Shown: positions 21,511-51,462, numbered from the stretch's first letter. The stretch is DNA of 64,000 bases from Entomortierella parvispora E1425 (GCA_020891255.1 BQFW01000004.1:2790001-2854000), one strand, 5' to 3'. Program-made: numbers and translations. Notes: generated from the letters alone by a model not told the origin.

Positions 21511-22230
21511 CTACTTCAGTCGCTTTTCAAATATTTCCAAAAACTCTGGCTCGTGTAGGTTCTCAAAGGGTCGGCGGCCACTCTTCCCCTTTGTCCACTC
21601 TGAGTATCGAACTTGGCCCATCTCCTCAAAGCCCAGTCGGTTCCTAAACAAGTGCTGAGTCGCAAACGCACTCGCCACAACCACCACTGCGTCACAATCC
21701 AGCTCCTTGGCCTTGCCCATTGCTGCATTCAACAGCTCCTTGGCCAATCCGAGGCCCTCGTACCTTGAATCGACTCCCAAAGCAATAAACTTCATGACCT
21801 TGGCATCTGGCTTTTCCTTGAAGAGAGTCGTCTTGTTCAACCACAGATCTGTCATATGGCTCAAAATCCCCTGCACGTCGTCACCCTCTTCAGATTCGCT
21901 GCCATCCTGACTTTGAGGCTGTTTTTTGTGCAATTTCTCTGCAGTCAAGAGACAACTGGTGCGGAATGCGACCAAACGACGAGGGCCAGCGAGAGAGGTG
22001 TCCTCCACCACAAAGGAGACTTGGTCCTTGACAGAGGCCTTTGCAATCTCGCGCCCCTCGGGCAGTCCCACGCCATGGTAGGCGCCCAATGGTTCCCGCT
22101 GGAATGTCTCGACAAAGAGTTGAGCCACTTCTCCTTGATCCTCGACAGTCATGGGCCGAAGAACCAGATGATCTGGTCGGCTGGCTACTGCTGTTGTTGG
22201 TTTGTTGGATGATCCGGTTGTTGATGTCAT
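21511..22230 (-). CDS. GNAT N-acetyltransferase (arylalkylamine NAT-like), intronless
   Basis: The likely ATG is at 22230 (MTSTTGSS). The protein contains VLRPMTVED, FQREPL, FIALGVDSRYEGLGLAKEL (acetyl-CoA motif A) and ATQHLFRNRLGFEE. Confidence 0.85.
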   Translation of the reverse strand: MTSTTGSSNKPTTAVASRPDHLVLRPMTVEDQGEVAQLFVETFQREPLGAYHGVGLPEGREIAKASVKDQVSFVVEDTSLAGPRRLVAFRTSCLLTAEKLHKKQPQSQDGSESEEGDDVQGILSHMTDLWLNKTTLFKEKPDAKVMKFIALGVDSRYEGLGLAKELLNAAMGKAKELDCDAVVVVASAFATQHLFRNRLGFEEMGQVRYSEWTKGKSGRRPFENLHEPEFLEIFEKRLK

Positions 22231-22532
22231 GGGAAGGGGGCGTGGGTATCGGTTGAAGAATAAAGAGAAGAGAAGAGAAAAGAAATGAAAGGTGAAATAT
22301 AGAAAAAAAAAACCTGTCTCAGAGGAGAACCTTCCTGGGGAACAGGCGGAGGTGAAAAGTTGACACGCCATGACGAAGAGAGAGACCGTCCTGCCGCGAA
22401 GGACGACGAAACGCCCTTTGTCCTTTATTTCAGGGTCCGCAATGCGGGTCGATGCATAGTGCCCTCCATTACAGGGCAGGATTGGGAAAGTTTTGTACAA
22501 AATGGATACTATTTTCATTGACGGCCAGGTCT

Positions 22533-25500
22533 TCAACCACCTGTGGGCTTCCTAGATGTACCATTACTACTGGTTTGACTGGGGACTTCAAAGTTTGCTG
22601 CCTCCAGTCTCGTCCTCATCAAGTACTCTATCCGACCAACAACATCGACCATCGAATATCTCTCAAGAAGCCGCTCCAACTCCTTGTTGTCCTTTGAAAA
22701 GAGGCTATGATCATCAGCACCGGTCCAGAAATGGTGTTGGATGGATTCTGTGAACAAGAGATAGAGCAATGGCATCAGTTTCTAGAGAAAACACACGGCG
22801 CTCAAAGATTCTGTTTTTTTTCTTACCATTTGCCCCTTGCCTCATATATTGTCGCGCAGCTGTTAGGTTTCCAGAGCACGCATCCAAAATGTCAATTGCC
22901 GTCAGCCTTGGTACGAGTTCAAGCACAGTCATCTTCCGGATCTGCTCTTTGTACTTGTGGCCTAGGTACAGCAAAAGGCGAGTGCGCTGCTGTTTGTCAT
23001 CGTCTGCGTCGCTGGTGCTGCCTAAGGCGATCTTAGCTTTAGGAAGATTATCCATGTAGAACTCTTTGCAAGGATCCGTGTTCCACTTGGCCCTCTTCCT
23101 AGAAGGCCCCTGAGAATCACCTGCGTGGACACGTCTTGTACGCGATGGAGCGGAAGTTGGCGAGGTCGAACGGCTCGTTTCGCTTTCCTCGCTCTCTTCG
23201 CTTTCCTCGTCACGAAGTGCTTCAATCTCTACAGCTTCCAAGATTTCAACCTGAGGGTCCTTGGCGTCTCTTGGACCGTCATCAGAATCGAGCAACAGCA
23301 CTGCCTCGACCACTTCCAGACCCCTTTGCTCCACATTGGTATTAGTTGCGCCGAGTCTTTCCGTGCTTTCCCTCTCGGTCTCCTTCGCGGTAACTATGGG
23401 ACCTTCGACAAGTCCCAAGGCCTCGACATATAAACCCTCGTCGTCGTCTTCGTCTAGATATTTCCCTTGGCTACCCTCCTCCTGCTCTGTCTCTTGGTTT
23501 ACATCTGATCTCTGGACCTCCTCTTCTGGAAATTCCCCCGACACATCTTCATTCTCAGACGAGTCCTTTGCAGAAAGCCCATCCTCAGGCTCTAGTCTTT
23601 CCGCATCTTGAGAATCAGCTACTTGCACAGGACCTTTTGCCGCCTCCTTTGCTTGGTCCAAACCTCTGTGACTAGCACTGTCGGCCTTGCTCTGGCTTAC
23701 ACTGTTAAACAGTGAGGATATGACAGAGTTGATCGCACCCACAAAGCCAAAACCGGATCGATCAAAGGTGGAGGATCCTGTGCCTGTTGTTCGCTGAGAT
23801 AGAATCTTCTCTGGGATGTGCATATCAAGGTCGACCGGCAATGGTGATTGTGACCTTTCCTCGGAACGGTTGCGGTCCCGCTTCTTCATCTTGGCTGAAA
23901 TCCGTCGCTTTACCTCCAAATCATCCTCATCGCTGAGTTCAGATGAGCTGCCTCGGTAGTCGATTTGAGGTTGGGGGCTTGGTCTGCCTTGTCCAGGCGG
24001 TATAGTATCCAAGCTTTCCTCAACCAACGAATCCTCCCTTCTGACTGATGAGCGCTTTACAGGCGAAAGCGTTTGTGGGAGAGGCAGGTTTGCTTGAGGC
24101 GAGCCTCGCCAAGCAGAGGGGCTAGACGGTGTGGCTACGTTCAACGACCAGTCCACATCTTCCTGATAGCCATCATCCTTCTCTTCCGGGTAGTTCTCTT
24201 GTTCTGGATACGAGTCAGCATTGTTATCGCCCAGAGAGAATGGCCCATCTGTAGGCAGAGTCTGTGCAGGGCGACCTAAATGCTCATCCAAAGCCGATTC
24301 TTCGCTGGGTGCTAATTCCTCGGATATCAGAGGTTCGGCCTCCGTGTTCACCTCTGGCTCTGCCTCCGGTACCACGTCTGGCGACGCAGACACAATTGTA
24401 GAAGGCAACTTCCTCTTCCGTGTGGTCTTTGTCGTTTTTGTCGTTTTTGTTGTCTTTGCCGTCTTTGCGCTTGGCGCGAGGTCCAGATTCTGTCGTTTTG
24501 ACATGGGGGTCACATACGAAACAAACTTCAAGTCTTTGTTAGGGCTTTGTGCCGTTGACGGCTTGCTTTGAGGTCGGGATTGTGAAATGCGACTCTGAGG
24601 TTCCTTCTTGGGGCTCAGCACCGAGTTGTGCTCATGATGCTGGGGAGGTGGCTGTAGTGGCTGCGAAAGTGGCTTCGAAAGTGTCCGTGATGTGCCACTT
24701 GATCGAGGTGAGAGTTTTGACATTTCCCGCTCGTGAAATTCCTGCTCGTCGTCTGAGCTGAGCTCAGTCAATCCCAACATCTCCAAGGGCATGGACGCTG
24801 ATAGGGACATATCAACTTGATGAATCTGAGACGTTGAATGCTGAGCTACGCGAGCGTCGTTGTCGTCGTCGTCGTCGTCACTATCGAGAACCTCCACAGC
24901 ATCCCTAGACACCTGCGATGGTGCCGATGGTCGCTCTGTTGGCGTGGGCTGCGATACGCGGTGTCTTTCGTTCTGATGGTTCGTTTCAGTCGTATTATCC
25001 TGCTCAGTGTCAGCGTCCAATGCCTCGTTTGTCTCGGAAGGTGCTAGTTTCGGCGCGGTTACTGCATGAGAGCTGCTTTGACTAACACTCCGTTGACTTT
25101 TCTGTAGTTCTGCCAACTTTTGTGCTCGAATAGCCTTGCTAGTCTCATATGGCGATGGAGGCTCAGTTAATCTCAGGACTTTGGCGCGATCTTTCCAGGA
25201 AGACCAAGGGTGTCTCTTGTTCTACAGGTGATTGAGATTTGGTAGGTGAGTAGAGGCTCGGGGAACACACATTTGATGCCAATTAGCAGAAACCCAGGGA
25301 TTCTTACAAATGCTGCAAAGGTATGGTATATGCGATTCCCTTTGAGATTGCTCGATCCCTTTGCTTTCAAGGATGCAATATACTTGCGAAGGTCGGCATC
25401 ATCCTGGCTGGTAAATGGGACCTTGTCCTTGCTGTTCGTTCGTCGAAGTCGATAGGTAAGATTGTCATGTTCCAGAATTCGTCCTTGCCTGATGCAATCA

Positions 25501-28269: not shown

Positions 28270-29496
28270 TTAAAGACGTGCATAGCTGCTCGCCGCCATA
28301 GCAAGTTCCTTGATCTGCTTCCGATCCAAGGCCTGGCCGTTCATGAACCATGAATGGACCGCCGTCTTCCATAATTTTTCCTTGCAGCTGTTGAAGAAGA
28401 ACCCCATGTGACCGACCTTCTTCATATTCAAGTCCTTGATGGGGTCCAGTCCCACGCACCGCCTCATTGCATTGGGCATCGAATCCATGATCTTGGGTGC
28501 TGATGTGGATGAAAAGTCATCGTCCGAGAAATATAACGAGTAGACTGGGACCTTGAATCGATCAAACGCTGGCTTCCACTCTGGATTTCCACCCAACATG
28601 TATTCCTTGAACGATCCCCAGTACGACCACGTCTCGAAGCATCCCTTGGGCAGATCCTCCATTGACTTCCAGAGTGTCTTGCCCGGGTAGAACCCATACC
28701 GTGCATTCACCACGGGTGAGGCCATGTAAAAGAACCAGTACGTGAACAGAGGCGAGTTCATGTTGCGCCAATAGGCAGAAGTCACACTGATGTACAGGCA
28801 TCTCTCCAGGTTTCGCGTGTAGTAAGAGTCAATGGCGGGAAGAATGTGTCCACCGACGGAATGGCCCACAAACAGGGTTGGGTTGTGAGGGAAGCGTTCG
28901 AGGACAAAATTGAAGACGCCTGGCAAATCCTGCATGCTCCAATCGACGATCGTGGCTTCGAACCCAATCAGGGGGTTCTTCTCTTTGGTTTCCTTTCCTG
29001 CTCCTGGTTTCTCGGGTTGGGCCTGTGCTGCAAGGTGAGCGTTGGATTTGGGTGGAAGTGCTGGTGCGGTGGCGTTGCCGACTGGAAGTGATCCCCGCTG
29101 TTGCTCGGCCTTCAAAAAGGACAATTGCTGTTGCTGCGATCCTGGCATGGATCGGCCAACACCTCTGTTATCATAAGTAATGACAATCATGCCGAGCTCT
29201 TGCGAGAGATAGTTGGAAAATTTGTAATAGAAATCTTGAATGGTCGCGGTGGCGGAGGAGATGATCACGACCTTGGTCAGCGCCTCGACCTCGGTTTTGT
29301 GAGTAGCACTGGAGGAGAGATCCGAGTTGTTTTTGGGACCGGGGTGTTGCGTTGACTGAGTGGTGACAATGGGTTGTGGGGGAAGGTGCAGAGTGCCACT
29401 GAGGAGGAAACCGTCCAGGGCAGTGATCGTGATCGGCTGGGGCTTGTTGCTAGAGCCGGCCTTTGTCCCTCGTGGCGGAGTTCCTGCAGTTGCCAT
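28270..29496 (-). CDS. Alpha/beta hydrolase of the bacterial COG4757-like family, intronless
   Basis: 408-aa ORF with ITALDGFLLSGTL, SATATIQDFYYKFS, ITYDNRGVGRS, DWSMQDL, VGHSVGG (nucleophile elbow), MEDLPKG, FSDDD and VGHMGFF. Confidence 0.85.
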   Translation of the reverse strand: MATAGTPPRGTKAGSSNKPQPITITALDGFLLSGTLHLPPQPIVTTQSTQHPGPKNNSDLSSSATHKTEVEALTKVVIISSATATIQDFYYKFSNYLSQELGMIVITYDNRGVGRSMPGSQQQQLSFLKAEQQRGSLPVGNATAPALPPKSNAHLAAQAQPEKPGAGKETKEKNPLIGFEATIVDWSMQDLPGVFNFVLERFPHNPTLFVGHSVGGHILPAIDSYYTRNLERCLYISVTSAYWRNMNSPLFTYWFFYMASPVVNARYGFYPGKTLWKSMEDLPKGCFETWSYWGSFKEYMLGGNPEWKPAFDRFKVPVYSLYFSDDDFSSTSAPKIMDSMPNAMRRCVGLDPIKDLNMKKVGHMGFFFNSCKEKLWKTAVHSWFMNGQALDRKQIKELAMAASSYARL

Positions 29497-30683: not shown

Positions 30684-32088
30684 ATGGCAATGTCGCTCGA
30701 TGCCCAGCAGGTCATGCTGGCCCAAAGCTGGACTGAAGACTCTGGAGTGGACCCTACAGGCTACTGGATGGCTGAGAAGTTGGTGCGTCTCATATCTCCC
30801 TGCTGCCGCTTTGTTAATCTGTTGACTGACGTTTTCCTCTCTTCCCATCAATCACTCATTCAGGACGGCATCCGCGCCTACTTTGATGGCACCAACTTTT
30901 ACTCTCGTGCCGGCAACAAGTTTACGGTACCTTCGTTCTTTAGCGAACATCTCCCCAAGGATCAGCCCCTCGATGGTGAACTTTGGCTTGGTCGTGGTCG
31001 TTTTCAACAATGCACCTCGATTGTCAAAAACCAAAAGGCTGCTCGAGCGGACGAATGGAAGGAGATGACCTACCTCGTCTTTGATGCTCCGAAATTGGAT
31101 GTGGTCTATGAAAAACGGCTCGACTATCTCAGGTCGATCATGCCAACTTATGGAAAGGATCTGATTCAGGGCAGTGGATACAGCGGCAATGTTCCCCCCC
31201 ATGCAAGATTGGTACCGGTCCAAAAGTGCGTCTCGAAATCTCACCTGTTGCGAGAATTGGATCATGTTCAAACTCACGGAGGTGAGGGTATTATGGTAAG
31301 GAAATGCATCCCGAAGTCTCCATAGTTCGTGTGTACATGCCCTGCCTTTTTTGTTTATATCCTGATCTAATCCCTTTACTATTTCACCTTTCTAGCTTCG
31401 CGCTCCTCGCTCCCGTTATGAGTTTAAACGTTCAAAGACACTGCTCAAGGTCAAGACGTTCTTTGACGAGGAAGCAATTGTTGTGGGCATTCAAAAAGGG
31501 TCAGGAAAGCATTCACATCGGATGGGCCATCTTGAGGTCAAGACGCCAGATGGTCGCGCATTCTCAGTTGGTACTGGTTTCACAGACGCTCAACGCGACA
31601 AACCTCCCAAAGTTGGCACTGTTATTACCTACAAGTTTCAAGAACTGAGTACTCGACTCAACCCACGGTTCCCATCTTTCGTTGGTGAACGCATTGATGT
31701 CCAATGGGCCGATTACTGCAGGACCTACAAACCGCCAACATTGAAGCAGGCCACGCCTGCTAAAGTCGTCAGTCTGTTGAAGCAAAAGAGTTTGATCTTT
31801 CAGGATGGAGACGATGGCGATGACGATGATGTAGTGATTAGCAAGACTACTACGATCATCACAGTAAAAGACGGAGACGACAGCGACAAGGACGGCATCA
31901 GTCCCGCTACACCTGCGACGAGCTCCAGCAGCTCCGGTCCGACCTCTACCCCACAAAAGAGAGGAGCAGTGGATAATGATGACAAGGACGATAATCTTCC
32001 CCTATGCAAATACGGAGTCAATTGCTACCGCAAGAATCCCGATCACCTCAAGCAATACAGTCATCCACACAAGAAGGCACGCTCATAG
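30684..32088 (+). CDS. Compact ATP-dependent DNA ligase (LigE/Chlorella-virus-like NTase-OB) fused to C-terminal PBZ zinc finger; 3 exons
   Basis: Motif I WMAEKL|DGIRA (intron 30783-30863), III LDGELW, IIIa YLVFD, IV GEGIM|LR (intron 31296-31395), V LLKVK, OB-fold VGTGF..GTVITYKFQELS..PRFPSF. The tail ends CKYGVNCYRKNPDHLKQYSHP. Confidence 0.92.
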
Positions 32089-37007: not shown

Positions 37008-38928
37008 ATGGGCAAGGACCCAGCTGCTGCGGCCAGAGGAGGAGGTTTGATTTCACGACCAGTCTCCGACCACCACGACACTTTCAACTGCTGCGACAAC
37101 GAAAGCCTCTCAACCGAAGGGAGCGTTGCGGATAGGGCCACCGAGTACTACTCATCTACCGAGAGCAACAGGTCTGCTTCCGAGGAAAGCCCTTTCAAGA
37201 CATTGCGGACCGGAATCTTTCTACGGGACGAACTAGAGCACGCCAGACATGCGAGGAGAGAAAGGGTGGCGTCACTGTTCAAAGACCATGGCAGTCATCT
37301 CCACTGTGAGAGATGCGGAGTTCAAGGGAAAATTGTTCAAGAGTCCAAGGGTAAAGGTAAAATGATGGGGTAGTATATAGCTTTTTTTTTTCTTGTTGAA
37401 TCAGTTCTCTTTTCTAACATATGATGCTGCCCCCCCCCCCTCACCCTGCACTCCGCACAGGCAAGTCGCGGTATCGCTGCAGAGGGATAGTGTCGGGCAA
37501 AACACAGTGTGGCAAGACTCACGGCATCAACTCCTTGGAGACGTGGCTCAATCACGTCTCAAAGGCCGAGACAGAAGAAGACTACGCACTTGCTACTGGA
37601 GCGAAGGGTGCGAAAGAAATGCAAGAGTATCTGGCAGTTCAATCCACCTATTCCCAGGAGCATGCCCTAGAGCCAAGTCTGGTTGACATAGAGGCTGCCA
37701 ATAACCGTGGGACTGAGGATCCAGATCAAGACGAGCACATGGTGAGATCTAGCTACCAGGGGATCTAGTTTCCAGGCTTTTAGTACGTCAGTGGAACTAT
37801 TCGTGCAAAACACAGCCCTAAACAATGCCTCTTTTATATCATCTCTTTATCTAGTGCGATGAACAATTTACGGACTACACAAGCAAGGCCTTCATCGAGA
37901 AAACCCACGACTTTGTCTTTCAGCGACTTCTTGAGTGTCCACACATTGAATTATCGGCCAAAAAGCTCTCAATCCGTGAAGAGTTGAAAATTTTGGAGGT
38001 GAAGGAAGGATCGGTCAAGTTTACGTTGCTCGAGGACCAGTTTGACCCTTGGAAACGTGCTCACGAGACTGAACTCGGAATCGAACTCAGACTGGCAAAG
38101 ATCAGGAAGCTCAAAAGGACGGGGAACAAGGAAGTGAATGAGACATACCTTTGCAATTACCACGGAAAGAGGCGAGTACCAAAAACAGACTGTAGCGCCC
38201 AACAGCCAGAAGCACGCAAAATGAAGCGGAAGCGTCAGAGCTTCAAGTGTGGGTGCAAGGGCAGGATCACCAAATCCCGTAAGAACGTCGTGATTGACGG
38301 CAATCAGTCGATTACCACCTTCGATATCCTTTACTCTATCGGACACAACCATCCTGTTTTCGACAAAAACACTGCCGGATCAAGACGTATCTCACAGGAA
38401 GCCAAGGCTTGGATTGAGAGGGAGCTCTTGAGAGGCGTGTCTCCTAAAGAGGTCATGAGAACAAGCACCGAGGCTCTCAGAGAAATCCGATTGAGGGATA
38501 CTGCAGCAGGAAAGCGACCACATCGCGACCATTACATCAGCTATATGGACGTTTATAACGTTTATTATCGGGTTTTCCGAAAGACAGACGAGGAATCAAA
38601 GGGCGACGCCGAAGTCCCAGCAGCTGATGGATCGGATGATGGATCGGAGGACGAGGAGGAAGACGTTTTTGTGAAGGAGGAAGAAGATGACTCGGCCGAC
38701 GATTCGGGAGTCTCTTGTACTATGAGATCGGATGAAGAATCAGAACCCAGCCAGATGGAGAGATTACTCCTGCTAAAGAAATTGCGAGGCGAGATGAAGT
38801 GCCGAAGAGCGAAGCGGATGAAGACAGAGAGATCGGATGAAGAATCAACAAAACAACTCAAAAGTGAATTCGGCGAGAGATTAGATAAAGAATCAATGAA
38901 CGACTCGAGGGTTCTCTTGACTGAATGA
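37008..38928 (+). CDS. Putative 3-exon gene: zinc-ribbon-like domain + MULE-type WRKY/GCM1/FAR1-like DNA-binding domain + acidic tail; no DDE domain
   Basis: HCERCGVQGKIVQESKG|KSRYRCRGIVSGKTQCGKT. A phase-0 intron at 37742-37854 joins in frame to YLCNYHG..QSFKCGCKGRI..YSIGHNHP and RDHYISYMDVYNVY, typical of MULE N-termini. Confidence 0.6.
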
Positions 38929-48135: not shown

Positions 48136-49266
48136 CCAGTGAGCGTTGCAAGATTGTGAATGAGAAAGTAAGGCGTGTGAAAGAGTGAAAGAAAGGGAGA
48201 GGAATGAGGATGTGAAGAAAGAGGGAAAGAGGGAAAGAGGGAAAGAGAGAGAGAGTGGAGAGAGTGGAGAGAGAGAGAGAGAGGAGAAAGAGTGTTGTCC
48301 TACAGAGTGAATGAGTGAGTGAATGACTGAATGAGTGGAGAATGAGCAAAGGAATGGGATTGCGGAGAGAAGAGAGAAGGGTGTCTGTCATCTCCATCTT
48401 TTGATGTCTCTCATCCTTTTGGCGGGGGTGAGTGGGTGCAGCCAACCGACGGGGTTGTCTCGTTGTTTTCTTCCCCGGGTCTCTCCTTCCCTGGCTAGTG
48501 AATACATACTCCTTCCTAGTTCTCTGACAATTCTCCCCTATCTTCCATCGTTGCCGGGCAAGTGGGCATGGCATCACCACCTCATCCGTCGTTCTTGTAT
48601 CGCACCTTTGATCCTCTCTCAGTCAGTCGTCTTTCCCTTGCAAACAAGCACTTTGCGCTCTGCCCAAGCATGGTTTTTGATCTCCGATCTATCTCTGTCT
48701 CGTCTCTCCACCGTTCCCTTTCTGATCCTGTCTGTCGTGCAAATGCAATGATGCGGGAATTATTACGATTTTTTTTATTTTTGGGTTGTGCGGTTGGACA
48801 TTGAAAGGGCAGCTCTCTCTCTCTCTCCTTCGCCCTCCGTTTTGTTCATCACGCCCTCGGTGCAGGTTCATTCCGAATCCCAGCCCAGCAGTGCGTCTGC
48901 GTCCACGCCCATGCTCTGTCTGATCAGCGCCCTGTTGCTTTTGCAATCTTTCGTGTGCCATGACCGACGCCACACGGCCAGGAGGACGTTCCTTTTCGCT
49001 CTTCCCTTGCGCCCTGCCCAGTGATCCTGGCCATTCCGATTTGTTGCAATAGGATCAGCAGGAAAAGACACTTTCAGAGCAAACTCATCGATCGATGTTT
49101 GCTCGAACCAAAAACATGAGATAAAATGAAGCACAGGTCACGTGCAGTTCGCGTTTCTTTTGAAGGCTTGACCCAGAACGCGATTTTTTTTTTTTTTTCA
49201 TGGTGTGTTGTTTGCTTTCACTCTTCACCGCGGGAGGATGCAGCCAGGACAGGACAGGAAGGACCA

Positions 49267-51462
49267 ATGCCCGTCTACCCGCCGTCGCAGTCGCTCGTCC
49301 CCTTGCTTCTCACCCAGGCAACATCAAGACGCCGCCATCACAGACGTCATCATTACAGCCTGACCCTCGACGATCACCACTCGCATGTGCCGGAATCAGA
49401 GGCGCTCTCTCCTCACAGCCAGTCCGACAATGACAGCAAGGGTGCATCCGACAATGACAGCCAGGCATCCATGGAAGAAAGCAGCAGTGTCGATTCTGAA
49501 TCAGATGAATCCGAATCTGATTCTTCCATCCTTTCGCTCACGCACCTCTCAGATGGTGAAGCTGTAAACAGTGATGCACCTTCTGTAGACCCTGTCGACC
49601 CTTCTTTTCTGGACCCTGCCGACCCTGAAGCTGCAGCAACAAAAGAGAGCCTGGATGATCTTCGACAGGCTTCCAGTCAACGTTTGGCCCAGGCATGGAA
49701 GGATATTTTCGAGCGGTACGAGGGACGGGACGAAAACGAAGCGGACGATGAGATTGACCTGATGACGGGCGAGATTATCGTAGACCAAGGCTTCCTCCGA
49801 GATCAAGATAGAAAGCTCTTTGGGACCATGACGAGGCTTGGTCTAGCATTGAAAGGACCGCAGGAGGAAGAAAAGGAAAAGCTTCGGAGAGCGAGTCGAA
49901 TGGCACGCCGTCGTTCAAAGGACAGAGAGCACAGCCATTCTGGAGCTGGCGGATCTCATCAACATTCTCGGCATCATGGAGGTCACAACAACGGAATGTA
50001 TCGCAAGGACAGCGGAGAGTCAGGTCAGATGTACGGCGGCGACGACTTTGACAATCTTTTATTTGCACCGAAAGACTCAAAGAAGGCATCGCCACCTCCC
50101 GCTACTTCCAAGCTTTTCGACGCTGAGAGTCTGAAGATTTTTGAGGATCTTTCTAATGACGAAAGCAACCATCCTCAAAGCGACGAAAGCGACGATCCTC
50201 AAAGCGACGAAAGCGACCATCCTCAGAGCGACGAAAGCGACCATCCTCAGAGCGACGAAAGCGACCTCCCCCAAAGCGAAGAGAGTGATCTTCCCCAAAG
50301 CGAAGAGAGTGACCTTCCCCAAAGCGAAGAAAGCGACCTTCCCCAAAGCAGCGAGTGCGACTCAGAAGGCGAGGACGAGGTCAAAGACCAGTATGAGGAG
50401 AAAGATAAAGAGTTCTTACAAGTTTCTGGGCGACCAACGGCCTTCGATACTCTTCCTTTCCAAAGAAGCAACTGGCAGAATGAGGACGCCGAGGGCCAGA
50501 GCCAGGACCAGTATGGAGAAGAAGAGGCATTACAGGACTTTGGGCGGCCCACACTGTTTGATACTCTTCCCTTTCAGAGAGAGTCGTCGTTGTCGAGTGG
50601 CCATTCAGGACCATTGGAGGACAGGATGACCCTAATAAGCAGACGAAGATCAAAAATGATGCCTAGAACTGTCGCTTTGGCCGACTCACTGTTCTCCAAA
50701 AGTCCGTCCTCTTCGCTGGTCCGTTCATCGCCTCCTGTTCGTTCGTCGCCGCCTGTTCGTTCGTCGCTGTCAGTTCGTTCGTCGCTGCCAGTCCAAGTTT
50801 CTTCGCCTGGTCATTCTTCTTCTCCTGTCCGATCTTCTTTGCCTGTCCAATCTTCTTTGCCTGTCCATTCCTCTTTGCCAGCCCGATCTTCTTCGCCAGT
50901 CCGATCTTCTTCGCCAGTCCGATCTTGTTCGCCAGTCCGATCTCCTTCTCCTGCCCGATCTCCTTCTTCCGTCCAATCTTTCTTACCGTCCCCTCTGTTA
51001 CCATCGGGCTCAACCTCTCCCCCACCGGAATGGTTTTCACCTTCCAGATACATACCTGCAGCAACTGTATCAATCCGTCCATCAACAGCCACTGCAACCA
51101 CAGTCTTGTCCAGCCAATTATTGACCAAGAGCGTCAAGCGGAAGCATCATGATATTGAGGAGGATACTGATATCTTGTTGACACCAAGAACCGCGCTGGC
51201 AAGGACGATCGATCTCTTGAGTCTGGAGTCACCTGGACCTTATTCGAGTCGCGCCGCATTGCCTCCATTACCTTCGTTCTCTTCTTCTTCGCCACTTCCA
51301 GCTGCTTCATCTGCATCAGCCATACCACAAGAGGCGATGATGGAGAGCCAAAAAGTTTTTTCTACAACGCCGGCAGTACCTCTACCACCTCCAACACCGC
51401 CGCCACCAAGTTGCGGTGGACCGGGCTTTTGCACCAAAGACTTTTGCTTCAGATGCATGTGA
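49267..51462 (+). CDS. SCM3: Scm3/HJURP-domain CENP-A chaperone
   Basis: LDDLRQASSQRLAQAWKDIFERYEG..ADDEIDLMTGEIIVDQGFLR is the Scm3 domain pattern. C-terminal CGGPGFCTKDFCFRC. Likely ATG at 49267. Confidence 0.85.
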   Translation: MPVYPPSQSLVPLLLTQATSRRRHHRRHHYSLTLDDHHSHVPESEALSPHSQSDNDSKGASDNDSQASMEESSSVDSESDESESDSSILSLTHLSDGEAVNSDAPSVDPVDPSFLDPADPEAAATKESLDDLRQASSQRLAQAWKDIFERYEGRDENEADDEIDLMTGEIIVDQGFLRDQDRKLFGTMTRLGLALKGPQEEEKEKLRRASRMARRRSKDREHSHSGAGGSHQHSRHHGGHNNGMYRKDSGESGQMYGGDDFDNLLFAPKDSKKASPPPATSKLFDAESLKIFEDLSNDESNHPQSDESDDPQSDESDHPQSDESDHPQSDESDLPQSEESDLPQSEESDLPQSEESDLPQSSECDSEGEDEVKDQYEEKDKEFLQVSGRPTAFDTLPFQRSNWQNEDAEGQSQDQYGEEEALQDFGRPTLFDTLPFQRESSLSSGHSGPLEDRMTLISRRRSKMMPRTVALADSLFSKSPSSSLVRSSPPVRSSPPVRSSLSVRSSLPVQVSSPGHSSSPVRSSLPVQSSLPVHSSLPARSSSPVRSSSPVRSCSPVRSPSPARSPSSVQSFLPSPLLPSGSTSPPPEWFSPSRYIPAATVSIRPSTATATTVLSSQLLTKSVKRKHHDIEEDTDILLTPRTALARTIDLLSLESPGPYSSRAALPPLPSFSSSSPLPAASSASAIPQEAMMESQKVFSTTPAVPLPPPTPPPPSCGGPGFCTKDFCFRCM
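50161..50352 (+). repeat. Coding 24-bp tandem repeat (PQS[D/E]ESD[D/H/L]) in Scm3
   Basis: About 8 copies of a CCTCAAAGCGACGAAAGCGACCAT-like unit. Confidence 0.85.
50710..50965 (+). repeat. Coding 18-bp degenerate repeat (SSPVRS) in Scm3
   Basis: The protein reads VRSSPPVRSSPPVRSSLSVRSSLPV..SSPVRSSSPVRSCSPVRSPSPARS. Confidence 0.8.

Follow-up and report, generated by a model that had tools for sequence, protein, structure and literature searches.

How a fungus came to carry a DNA ligase of bacterial type joined to a zinc finger of the kind that reads poly(ADP-ribose) (PAR), and what such an enzyme would do, is the question raised by a gene on the forward strand at positions 30684-32088 of a 64,000-nucleotide stretch of the Entomortierella parvispora E1425 genome (GCA_020891255.1, BQFW01000004.1:2790001-2854000), hereafter the window. 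A Mortierella DNA ligase E (LigE) with a C-terminal PAR-binding zinc finger (PBZ) has been described before (Nicolas et al., 2023, Nat Commun 14:7638, PMC10665377). The same study described a ligase E that bdelloid rotifers gained by horizontal transfer and whose C-terminus bears PBZ domains, the induction of MvLigE, the PBZ-bearing enzyme of M. verticillata, 4-24 h after 0.2 kGy of X-rays, and the capacity of AvLigE to supply break-ligation activity and to improve the radiotolerance of human cells (PMC10665377). By its exon-intron structure, its domains, the intact catalytic motifs, the fold, the orthology and its place in the tree, the E. parvispora gene is a LigE of this kind; very probably it is the orthologue of MvLigE and AvLigE, and its PBZ would recruit the enzyme to damage. 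A preliminary description of the locus had suggested that a horizontally acquired ligase may have been rewired in this fungus for recruitment by PARP signalling.

Gene structure

The gene has three exons and two canonical GT..AG introns, as the preliminary description had anticipated in calling it intron-bearing. The spliced frame of 1224 nt, in which all exons are in phase 0, encodes 407 amino acids (aa), and the product (P0001) is identical to the NCBI hypothetical protein EMPS_03465 of E. parvispora; the locus lies on a 2.9-Mb contig. The features of the gene are as follows.

30684..30782, + strand: exon 1, residues 1-33; N-terminus and first half of motif I
30783..30863, + strand: intron 1, 81 nt, GTGCGT..CAG, phase 0; cuts motif I (EKL/DG)
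30864..31295, + strand: exon 2, residues 34-177; nucleotidyltransferase (NTase) motifs I (DG), III, IIIa and first half of IV
31296..31395, + strand: intron 2, 100 nt, GTAAGG..TAG, phase 0; cuts motif IV (EGIM/LR)
31396..32088, + strand: exon 3, residues 178-407 and stop; end of NTase domain (motifs IV, V), oligonucleotide-binding (OB) domain, extension, linker, PBZ and basic tail
31495..31692, + strand: Lig E-type OB domain (PF14743), residues 211-276, with motif VI PRFPSF; predicted local distance difference test (pLDDT) score >90
31693..31800, + strand: post-OB extension, residues 277-312; W..DYC..Y.PP, two short helices, then KQKSLIF
31801..31998, + strand: acidic, Ser/Thr-rich linker, residues 313-378, about 65 residues; pLDDT 40-54, disordered
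31999..32073, + strand: PBZ zinc finger (PF10283), residues 379-403; Cys381, Cys387, His394 and His400
32074..32088, + strand: basic C-terminal tail KKARS and stop; HP.K[KR].[KR] kept in 12 of 12 aligned Mortierellaceae

The introns interrupt two catalytic motifs (EKL|DG and EGIM|LR), and the family consensus is found only in the spliced product; exon 2 by itself matches PRK09125 at 9.7e-32. The same two intron positions occur in Podila minutissima (L002) and in a Mortierellaceae metagenome contig (L001), and DNA identity across the Mortierellaceae loci is 69-81% in exons against 37-47% in introns (exon 1 by itself 76-81%, against 37-47% for intron 1). The three-exon splicing is thus predicted on the combined basis of the deposited annotation, the restored motifs, the kept intron positions and the difference between exon and intron identity, and for the M. 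verticillata orthologue there are published RT-qPCR measurements (PMC10665377). The GC content of the gene (0.476-0.488, against a window mean of 0.50) reveals no base-composition anomaly, and a recent transfer inferred from composition was rejected on this ground.

The ligase core

Residues 5-276 are, as judged from sequence, a Lig E-type minimal ATP-dependent DNA ligase, for which nick sealing is predicted. They match the NCBIfam equivalog NF006592/PRK09125 (model positions 26-280) at 280.2 bits, above the cut-off of 200, with an E-value of 1.4e-83, and Pfam recognises DNA_ligase_A_M (PF01068, 1.1e-9) and the Lig E-type OB domain (PF14743, 1e-24) in addition to the PBZ (PF10283, 2.3e-13). 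Motifs I, III, IIIa, IV, V and VI, including the lysine predicted to be adenylated, are intact and are invariant or nearly so in a 102-sequence alignment. They fall at EKLDG (residues 31-35), LDGELW (69-74), YLVFDAP (103-109), EGIMLR (174-179), LLKVK (193-197), VGTGF (235-239) and PRFPSF (267-272), the codon of the active-site Lys32 lying at nt 30777-30779 in exon 1, and every motif string quoted in the preliminary description is found in the spliced protein where it would be expected.

The architecture consists of the NTase and Lig E-type OB domains only, with no latch (Pfam, AlphaFold2 and Foldseek), and no N-terminal DNA-binding domain (DBD) was found by Pfam, by a search of the PDB or in the AlphaFold2 model, the protein beginning 9 residues ahead of the conserved core. 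Nor was a signal peptide found in the exon 1 product; the PRK09125 alignment begins at model position 26, and therefore the bacterial leader is missing. The missing signal peptide sets eukaryotic LigE apart from bacterial Lig E, and is not part of the definition of the fold. The best sequence matches in the PDB are Lig E structures (4D05, 8.8e-48; 8U6X, 1e-46; 6GDR, 6.9e-40), with the Chlorella virus ligase at about 1e-12. An AlphaFold2 model built from the 102-sequence alignment has a mean pLDDT of 83.7, with the core (residues 1-296) mostly >90, residues 300-372 disordered and the PBZ finger at about 90. Its top Foldseek match is Lig E 6GDR (E 3.9e-29, target TM score 0.89), with 8U6X and 4D05 also among the best, and LIG1, LIG3 and LIG4 are matched solely through the common catalytic core, at 16-20% identity. 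The compact ligase lacking a LIG1/3/4-type DBD, as first described, is therefore borne out by Pfam, PRK09125 and AlphaFold2/Foldseek, and its bacterial ancestry, distinct from LIG1, LIG3 and LIG4, agrees with the PDB, Foldseek, Pfam and PRK09125 results and with the published account (PMC10665377).

The bacterial Lig E of Psychromonas (4D05), Neisseria gonorrhoeae (8U6X) and Alteromonas (6GDR) share this two-domain scaffold without DBD or latch and have all the catalytic motifs, at 34-37% identity, but have no C-terminal extension or PBZ. Bacterial Lig E are described as carrying a signal peptide and acting in the periplasm or on extracellular DNA.

The C-terminal extension, linker and zinc finger

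The finger scores 50.3 bits against a Pfam gathering threshold of 22.7, with CKYG..SH at residues 381-400 and the spacing C-x5-C-x6-H-x5-H. In a PDB search with the full protein, residues 371-401 match the PBZ fingers of APLF, and the PBZ by itself aligns to both APLF fingers (E 2.5e-14) with an identical C.YG..CYRKNP.H core, the residues of which (C.YG..CYR.NP.H) contact PAR in APLF. Matches of the PBZ segment to GFP in the PDB (E 1.6e-4 to 0.2, with matched stretches none or marginal) were dismissed as chance. The preliminary description of an acidic, serine-containing linker followed by an APLF-type PBZ in the same frame is upheld by Pfam, by the spacing and by the APLF alignment. The finger is invariant in 12 of 12 aligned Mortierellaceae. 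The linker that precedes it varies in length within the family, has a DNA identity of 43-50% and contains a small basic patch (QKRG); this patch and the basic tail may serve nuclear import, the tail being a candidate nuclear localisation signal.

Between the OB domain and the linker lies the motif KQKSLIF (residues 306-312, nt 31780-31800). The two helices of the extension (281-287 and 293-296) are modelled with confidence, and KQKSLIF itself has low pLDDT. Its clade consensus, [KR]-x-[HK]-[ST]-[IL]-[LIM]-[FY], is present in 59 of 71 Lig E with a C-terminal PBZ, in none of 21 with an N-terminal PBZ, and in 3 of 122 short, mostly bacterial proteins. Alignments place the extension and its motif in Mortierellaceae, rotifer, dinoflagellate and other eukaryotic LigE, and on this sequence distribution the motif appears specific to a eukaryotic LigE clade with C-terminal accessory modules. 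A match in a 2157-nt contig of a gammaproteobacterial metagenome-assembled genome (L034; 42% identity) continues up to residue 321, through the eukaryote-type post-OB extension, and may be a eukaryotic fragment mis-binned in a bacterial genome. KQKSLIF was also considered as a Ku-binding motif; the X-KBM sits at the extreme C-terminus, KQKSLIF does not, and the idea remains a guess.

Homologues and phylogeny

An exhaustive phmmer search returned 11483 relatives, 907 of them below 1e-30. The same architecture is present in about 30 Mortierellaceae species of many genera, at 58-76% identity overall, and both the gene and its linkage are present and syntenic across all sampled genera of the family. 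After Mortierellaceae, the named relatives are eukaryotic LigE-PBZ proteins at 43-48% identity (best 120 named matches, checked with Pfam). They come from bdelloid rotifers, from EukProt/MMETSP protists including Vannella, from the dinoflagellate Effrenium, from the snail Biomphalaria and from chytrids (Cladochytrium, Irineochytrium, Phlyctochytrium and Chytriomyces). No protein of Mucorales, Glomeromycotina or Dikarya is among these 120. A PBZ is carried by 45 of the 150 best cluster representatives, C-terminally in 27 and N-terminally in 18, and the nearest eukaryotic cluster members are mostly Logan, JGI or EukProt transcripts.

Other damage-signalling modules occupy the place of the Mortierella PBZ in LigE from uncultured or transcriptome eukaryotes, namely Macro (P0296, P0134), BRCT with WWE (P0294, P0127), BRCT (P0292, P0293, P0311, P0250), PBZ with FHA_2 (P0270) and ankyrin (P0298), Macro and WWE being two further ADP-ribose readers. 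A 625-aa protein of Phlyctochytrium bullatum (P0291) carries, in front of its PBZ and LigE, the final 40 positions of a TauD dioxygenase domain, and is probably two adjacent genes fused by annotation.

The core domain was analysed with IQ-TREE (62 rows, LG+C20+F+G4), giving an unrooted tree in which five classical Lig E were sampled. Classical signal-peptide Lig E are split from all others by a 99/96 branch, beyond which lie an all-eukaryote LigE clade (98/89) and a separate bacterial clade of Myxococcota and Planctomycetota enzymes. The eukaryotic clade divides into an N-terminal-PBZ clade (chytrids and Biomphalaria, 99/95) and a C-terminal-accessory clade (100/99), the latter containing Mortierellaceae (100/100) with rotifers, dinoflagellates and others; rotifer LigE form their own subclade (100/98), and relationships inside the C-terminal clade are poorly resolved. 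Because the gene nests in a eukaryotic Lig E clade whose members mostly have a C-terminal PBZ, the fusion predates Mortierellaceae, and the sequences indicate that the family inherited an already fused LigE-PBZ, which was not made in E. parvispora. Shared introns were tried as a sign of common eukaryotic descent and rejected; Adineta steineri LigE has its introns behind DGVR and GEIW and close to residue 188, none of them at the fungal positions, and one eukaryotic LigE homologue is intronless.

Origin of the fungal gene

Four accounts of how the gene reached E. parvispora have to be weighed against this tree. A direct passage of a proteobacterial Lig E into the fungal lineage, where it would have acquired introns and, on its own, a PBZ, much as the preliminary description had it, accords with a family that is mostly bacterial, with many short bacterial proteins among its matches, with a core about as close to bacteria (46-51% identity) as to other eukaryotes (43-52%), with introns at other positions than those of rotifer LigE, and with the lack of introns in one eukaryotic homologue. 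It is nevertheless very unlikely, since Mortierellaceae are nested in the C-terminal-accessory clade and in turn in the all-eukaryote clade, constraining them to the bacterial side is rejected (approximately unbiased test, p-AU 0.024), the post-OB extension and motif are common to eukaryotic LigE and absent from bacteria, and most clade members have the C-terminal PBZ at the same position. Rewiring within this fungus was not borne out. The likeness to proteobacterial LigE claimed at the outset stands as regards the fold family (Lig E or Chlorella-virus-like) and fails as regards the closest bacterial relatives, which are instead enzymes of Myxococcota and Planctomycetota. An artefact, whether bacterial contamination, a pseudogene or an organellar ligase, is barely credible: beyond the bacterial affinity of the core domain nothing speaks for it, and against it stand the 2.9-Mb contig, the spliceosomal introns, the fungal neighbours, the conserved synteny, the intact frame and motifs and, for an organellar enzyme, the lack of any N-terminal extension able to act as a targeting peptide.

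The choice is then largely between descent and transfer among eukaryotes. If LigE-PBZ were an old fungal or eukaryotic gene that reached Mortierellomycota by vertical descent and disappeared from groups such as Dikarya and Mucorales, the presence of LigE with a PBZ in chytrids, the syntenic occurrence of the gene across all sampled Mortierellaceae genera and its unremarkable base composition would follow, and a clade of Mortierellaceae with chytrids is indeed not rejected (p-AU 0.076). Yet chytrid LigE belong to the other clade, with N-terminal PBZ and without the post-OB motif, the constrained tree is 44 log-likelihood units worse, and the 120 best named matches include none from Mucorales, Glomeromycotina or Dikarya, which makes this account a somewhat doubtful one. 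We make no claim of fungal polyphyly, because of that p-AU value and because the group of Mortierellaceae and chytrids was named after the tree had been seen. Acquisition of an already fused LigE-PBZ by the Mortierellomycota stem from another eukaryote, for example a soil protist, is a proposition that we hold to be about as probable as its negation. The nearest neighbours are non-fungal LigE-PBZ from EukProt and other transcriptomes, the eukaryotic distribution is patchy, and repeated horizontal acquisition is favoured in the published study (PMC10665377); on the other side, forks within the C-terminal clade are poorly resolved, and the approximately unbiased test does not exclude fungal monophyly.

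Bacterial relatives with SWIM-like and WGR domains

The closest bacterial cores, at 46-51% identity to E. parvispora LigE and in some cases on complete chromosomes, belong to Kofleriaceae, Polyangiaceae, Chondromyces apiculatus, Labilithrix luteola, Myxococcus and Archangium, and further to Gemmataceae, Singulisphaera, Pirellulales and some Verrucomicrobiota. These proteins (SWIM-LigE-WGR; examples are L006-L085 and P0048, P0300, P0304, P0328, P0331 and P0165) have an N-terminal SWIM-like finger, CxCPAW..RTCKH, and one to five C-terminal WGR domains, an architecture not found in the Lig E literature examined. None of them has a signal peptide; hydrophobic leaders are seen in the classical Lig E that were sampled. 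In the tree, the enzymes of Myxococcota and Planctomycetota (those of Labilithrix luteola, Chondromyces apiculatus and Singulisphaera, for example) stand with eukaryotic LigE on one side of a 99/96 bipartition and classical Lig E on the other. They resemble eukaryotic LigE in the missing signal peptide and in having an accessory module after the OB domain, and differ from the fungal protein in bearing a CxC..CxH finger and WGR rather than a PBZ, and in having no post-OB motif.

With an unrooted tree and five classical Lig E, the direction of events between SWIM-LigE-WGR and eukaryotic LigE is not shown. As a speculation that we consider unlikely as a whole, eukaryotic LigE might derive, rather than from periplasmic proteobacterial Lig E, from a cytoplasmic SWIM-LigE-WGR enzyme of Myxococcota or Planctomycetota fused to break sensors, through one early entry, with WGR repeatedly swapped for PBZ, Macro, WWE, BRCT or FHA and with the post-OB peptide as a previously undescribed docking motif for a repair partner, one guess being a role like that of a Ku-binding motif.

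Proposed recruitment through ADP-ribose

As a PAR-recruited ligase, the E. parvispora protein would work by established ligase chemistry, in which Lys32 would be adenylated by ATP; the core would clamp the nick as Lig E does in 6GDR and would seal nicks and breaks in nuclear DNA. By comparison with APLF and CHFR, the PBZ would tether the ligase, via the flexible linker, to PAR made at strand breaks, and the enzyme may thus be an accessory, damage-induced ligase alongside LIG1 and LIG4. The link to ADP-ribose is consistent, by analogy, with the Macro, WWE, BRCT and FHA modules that replace or add to the PBZ in related LigE, and this functional reading is plausible and agrees with the published view.

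Several points weigh against the account as a whole. The nearest eukaryotic neighbours in the tree are mostly transcriptome or metagenome proteins. PARP, the polymerase that makes PAR, is patchy in fungi, with several losses (PMC2964712), and PAR binding and PARP dependence of the LigE PBZ were not examined in the published study (PMC10665377). We found no later literature on LigE PBZ function and no survey of PARP in Mortierella. Pfam scans of ten long LigE fusions detected no PARP catalytic domain (WGR, BRCT, WWE and PBZ were found), and no PARP was found in scans of large open reading frames (ORFs) within the 64-kb window.

It could be, then, that the finger reads not PAR but mono- or oligo-ADP-ribose, DNA or a protein partner, in a fungus that may be without a polymer-forming PARP, as the repeated fungal losses of the enzyme would allow (PMC2964712). 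We regard this as improbable. Over the C.YG..CYRKNP.H core the finger is nearly the same as the two fingers of APLF, both of which bind PAR, its invariance across Mortierellaceae argues for a conserved ligand, and at this position related LigE bear Macro or WWE, which are also readers of ADP-ribose.

Comparison with known systems

The closest known counterpart of the E. parvispora ligase is MvLigE of Mortierella (Podila) verticillata, a single-copy protein of the same fungal family with the same Lig E core and a single C-terminal PBZ; orthologues from Podila and other genera are 58-76% identical and have the same introns and neighbour gene. The two differ in that radiation induction was recorded in M. 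verticillata, a species other than E. parvispora, and the linker is rather short in the E. parvispora copy, a protein of 407 aa against 410-459 aa in its relatives. AvLigE-A/B of Adineta and Rotaria belong to the same C-terminal-accessory clade, at 44-45% identity, with a C-terminal PBZ and a post-OB [KR]xH[ST]ILF; unlike the fungal proteins they have one or two PBZ, repeats rich in Pro, Ser and Thr, other intron positions and a subclade of their own. The tandem PBZ of APLF (2KQB, 2KUO) has the same finger spacing and an identical core, but APLF itself, which has two fingers, lacks a ligase domain and serves as an FHA scaffold and as a histone chaperone. The resemblance to animal LIG3-XRCC1 is an analogy in function only, that of a ligase proposed to be recruited to breaks via PAR signalling; LIG3 differs in its DBD, its PARP-like zinc finger and its BRCT domain, reads PAR mainly through XRCC1, and is 17% identical (Foldseek).

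The locus alone adds little, beyond confirming that LigE-PBZ is stable, syntenic and intron-bearing throughout Mortierellaceae. The family is of interest as a minimal ligase of bacterial type wired into the damage signalling of eukaryotes. To the published account (PMC10665377) can be added that PBZ fusions are common in eukaryotic LigE, with Macro, WWE, BRCT and FHA at the same position, that the C-terminal-accessory clade has a short conserved post-OB peptide, and that among bacteria the sister group is formed by a cytoplasmic SWIM-LigE-WGR ligase.

Among possible hosts for experiments, Mortierella alpina and its relatives are transformable, and are convenient for studying PAR-dependent recruitment of a minimal ligase.

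Neighbouring genes

Upstream of the ligase gene and divergent from it, at 28273-29496 on the reverse strand, lies a 408-aa ORF resembling alpha/beta-hydrolases, with a weak Abhydrolase_1 match. The same gene adjoins LigE on the Mortierellaceae contig L001 and, at 3722-4936 of L002, in Podila minutissima, so that the hydrolase-LigE pair is syntenic across genera. Elsewhere in the window, a 314-aa ORF at 37984-38925 has a sub-threshold match to the FAR1 DNA-binding domain (E 2.3e-4). A long ORF at 49126-51459 on the forward strand has an Scm3 (CENP-A chaperone) domain (1.5e-14) and one at 21514-22536 on the reverse strand has a GNAT acetyltransferase domain, both of which look like ordinary neighbours.

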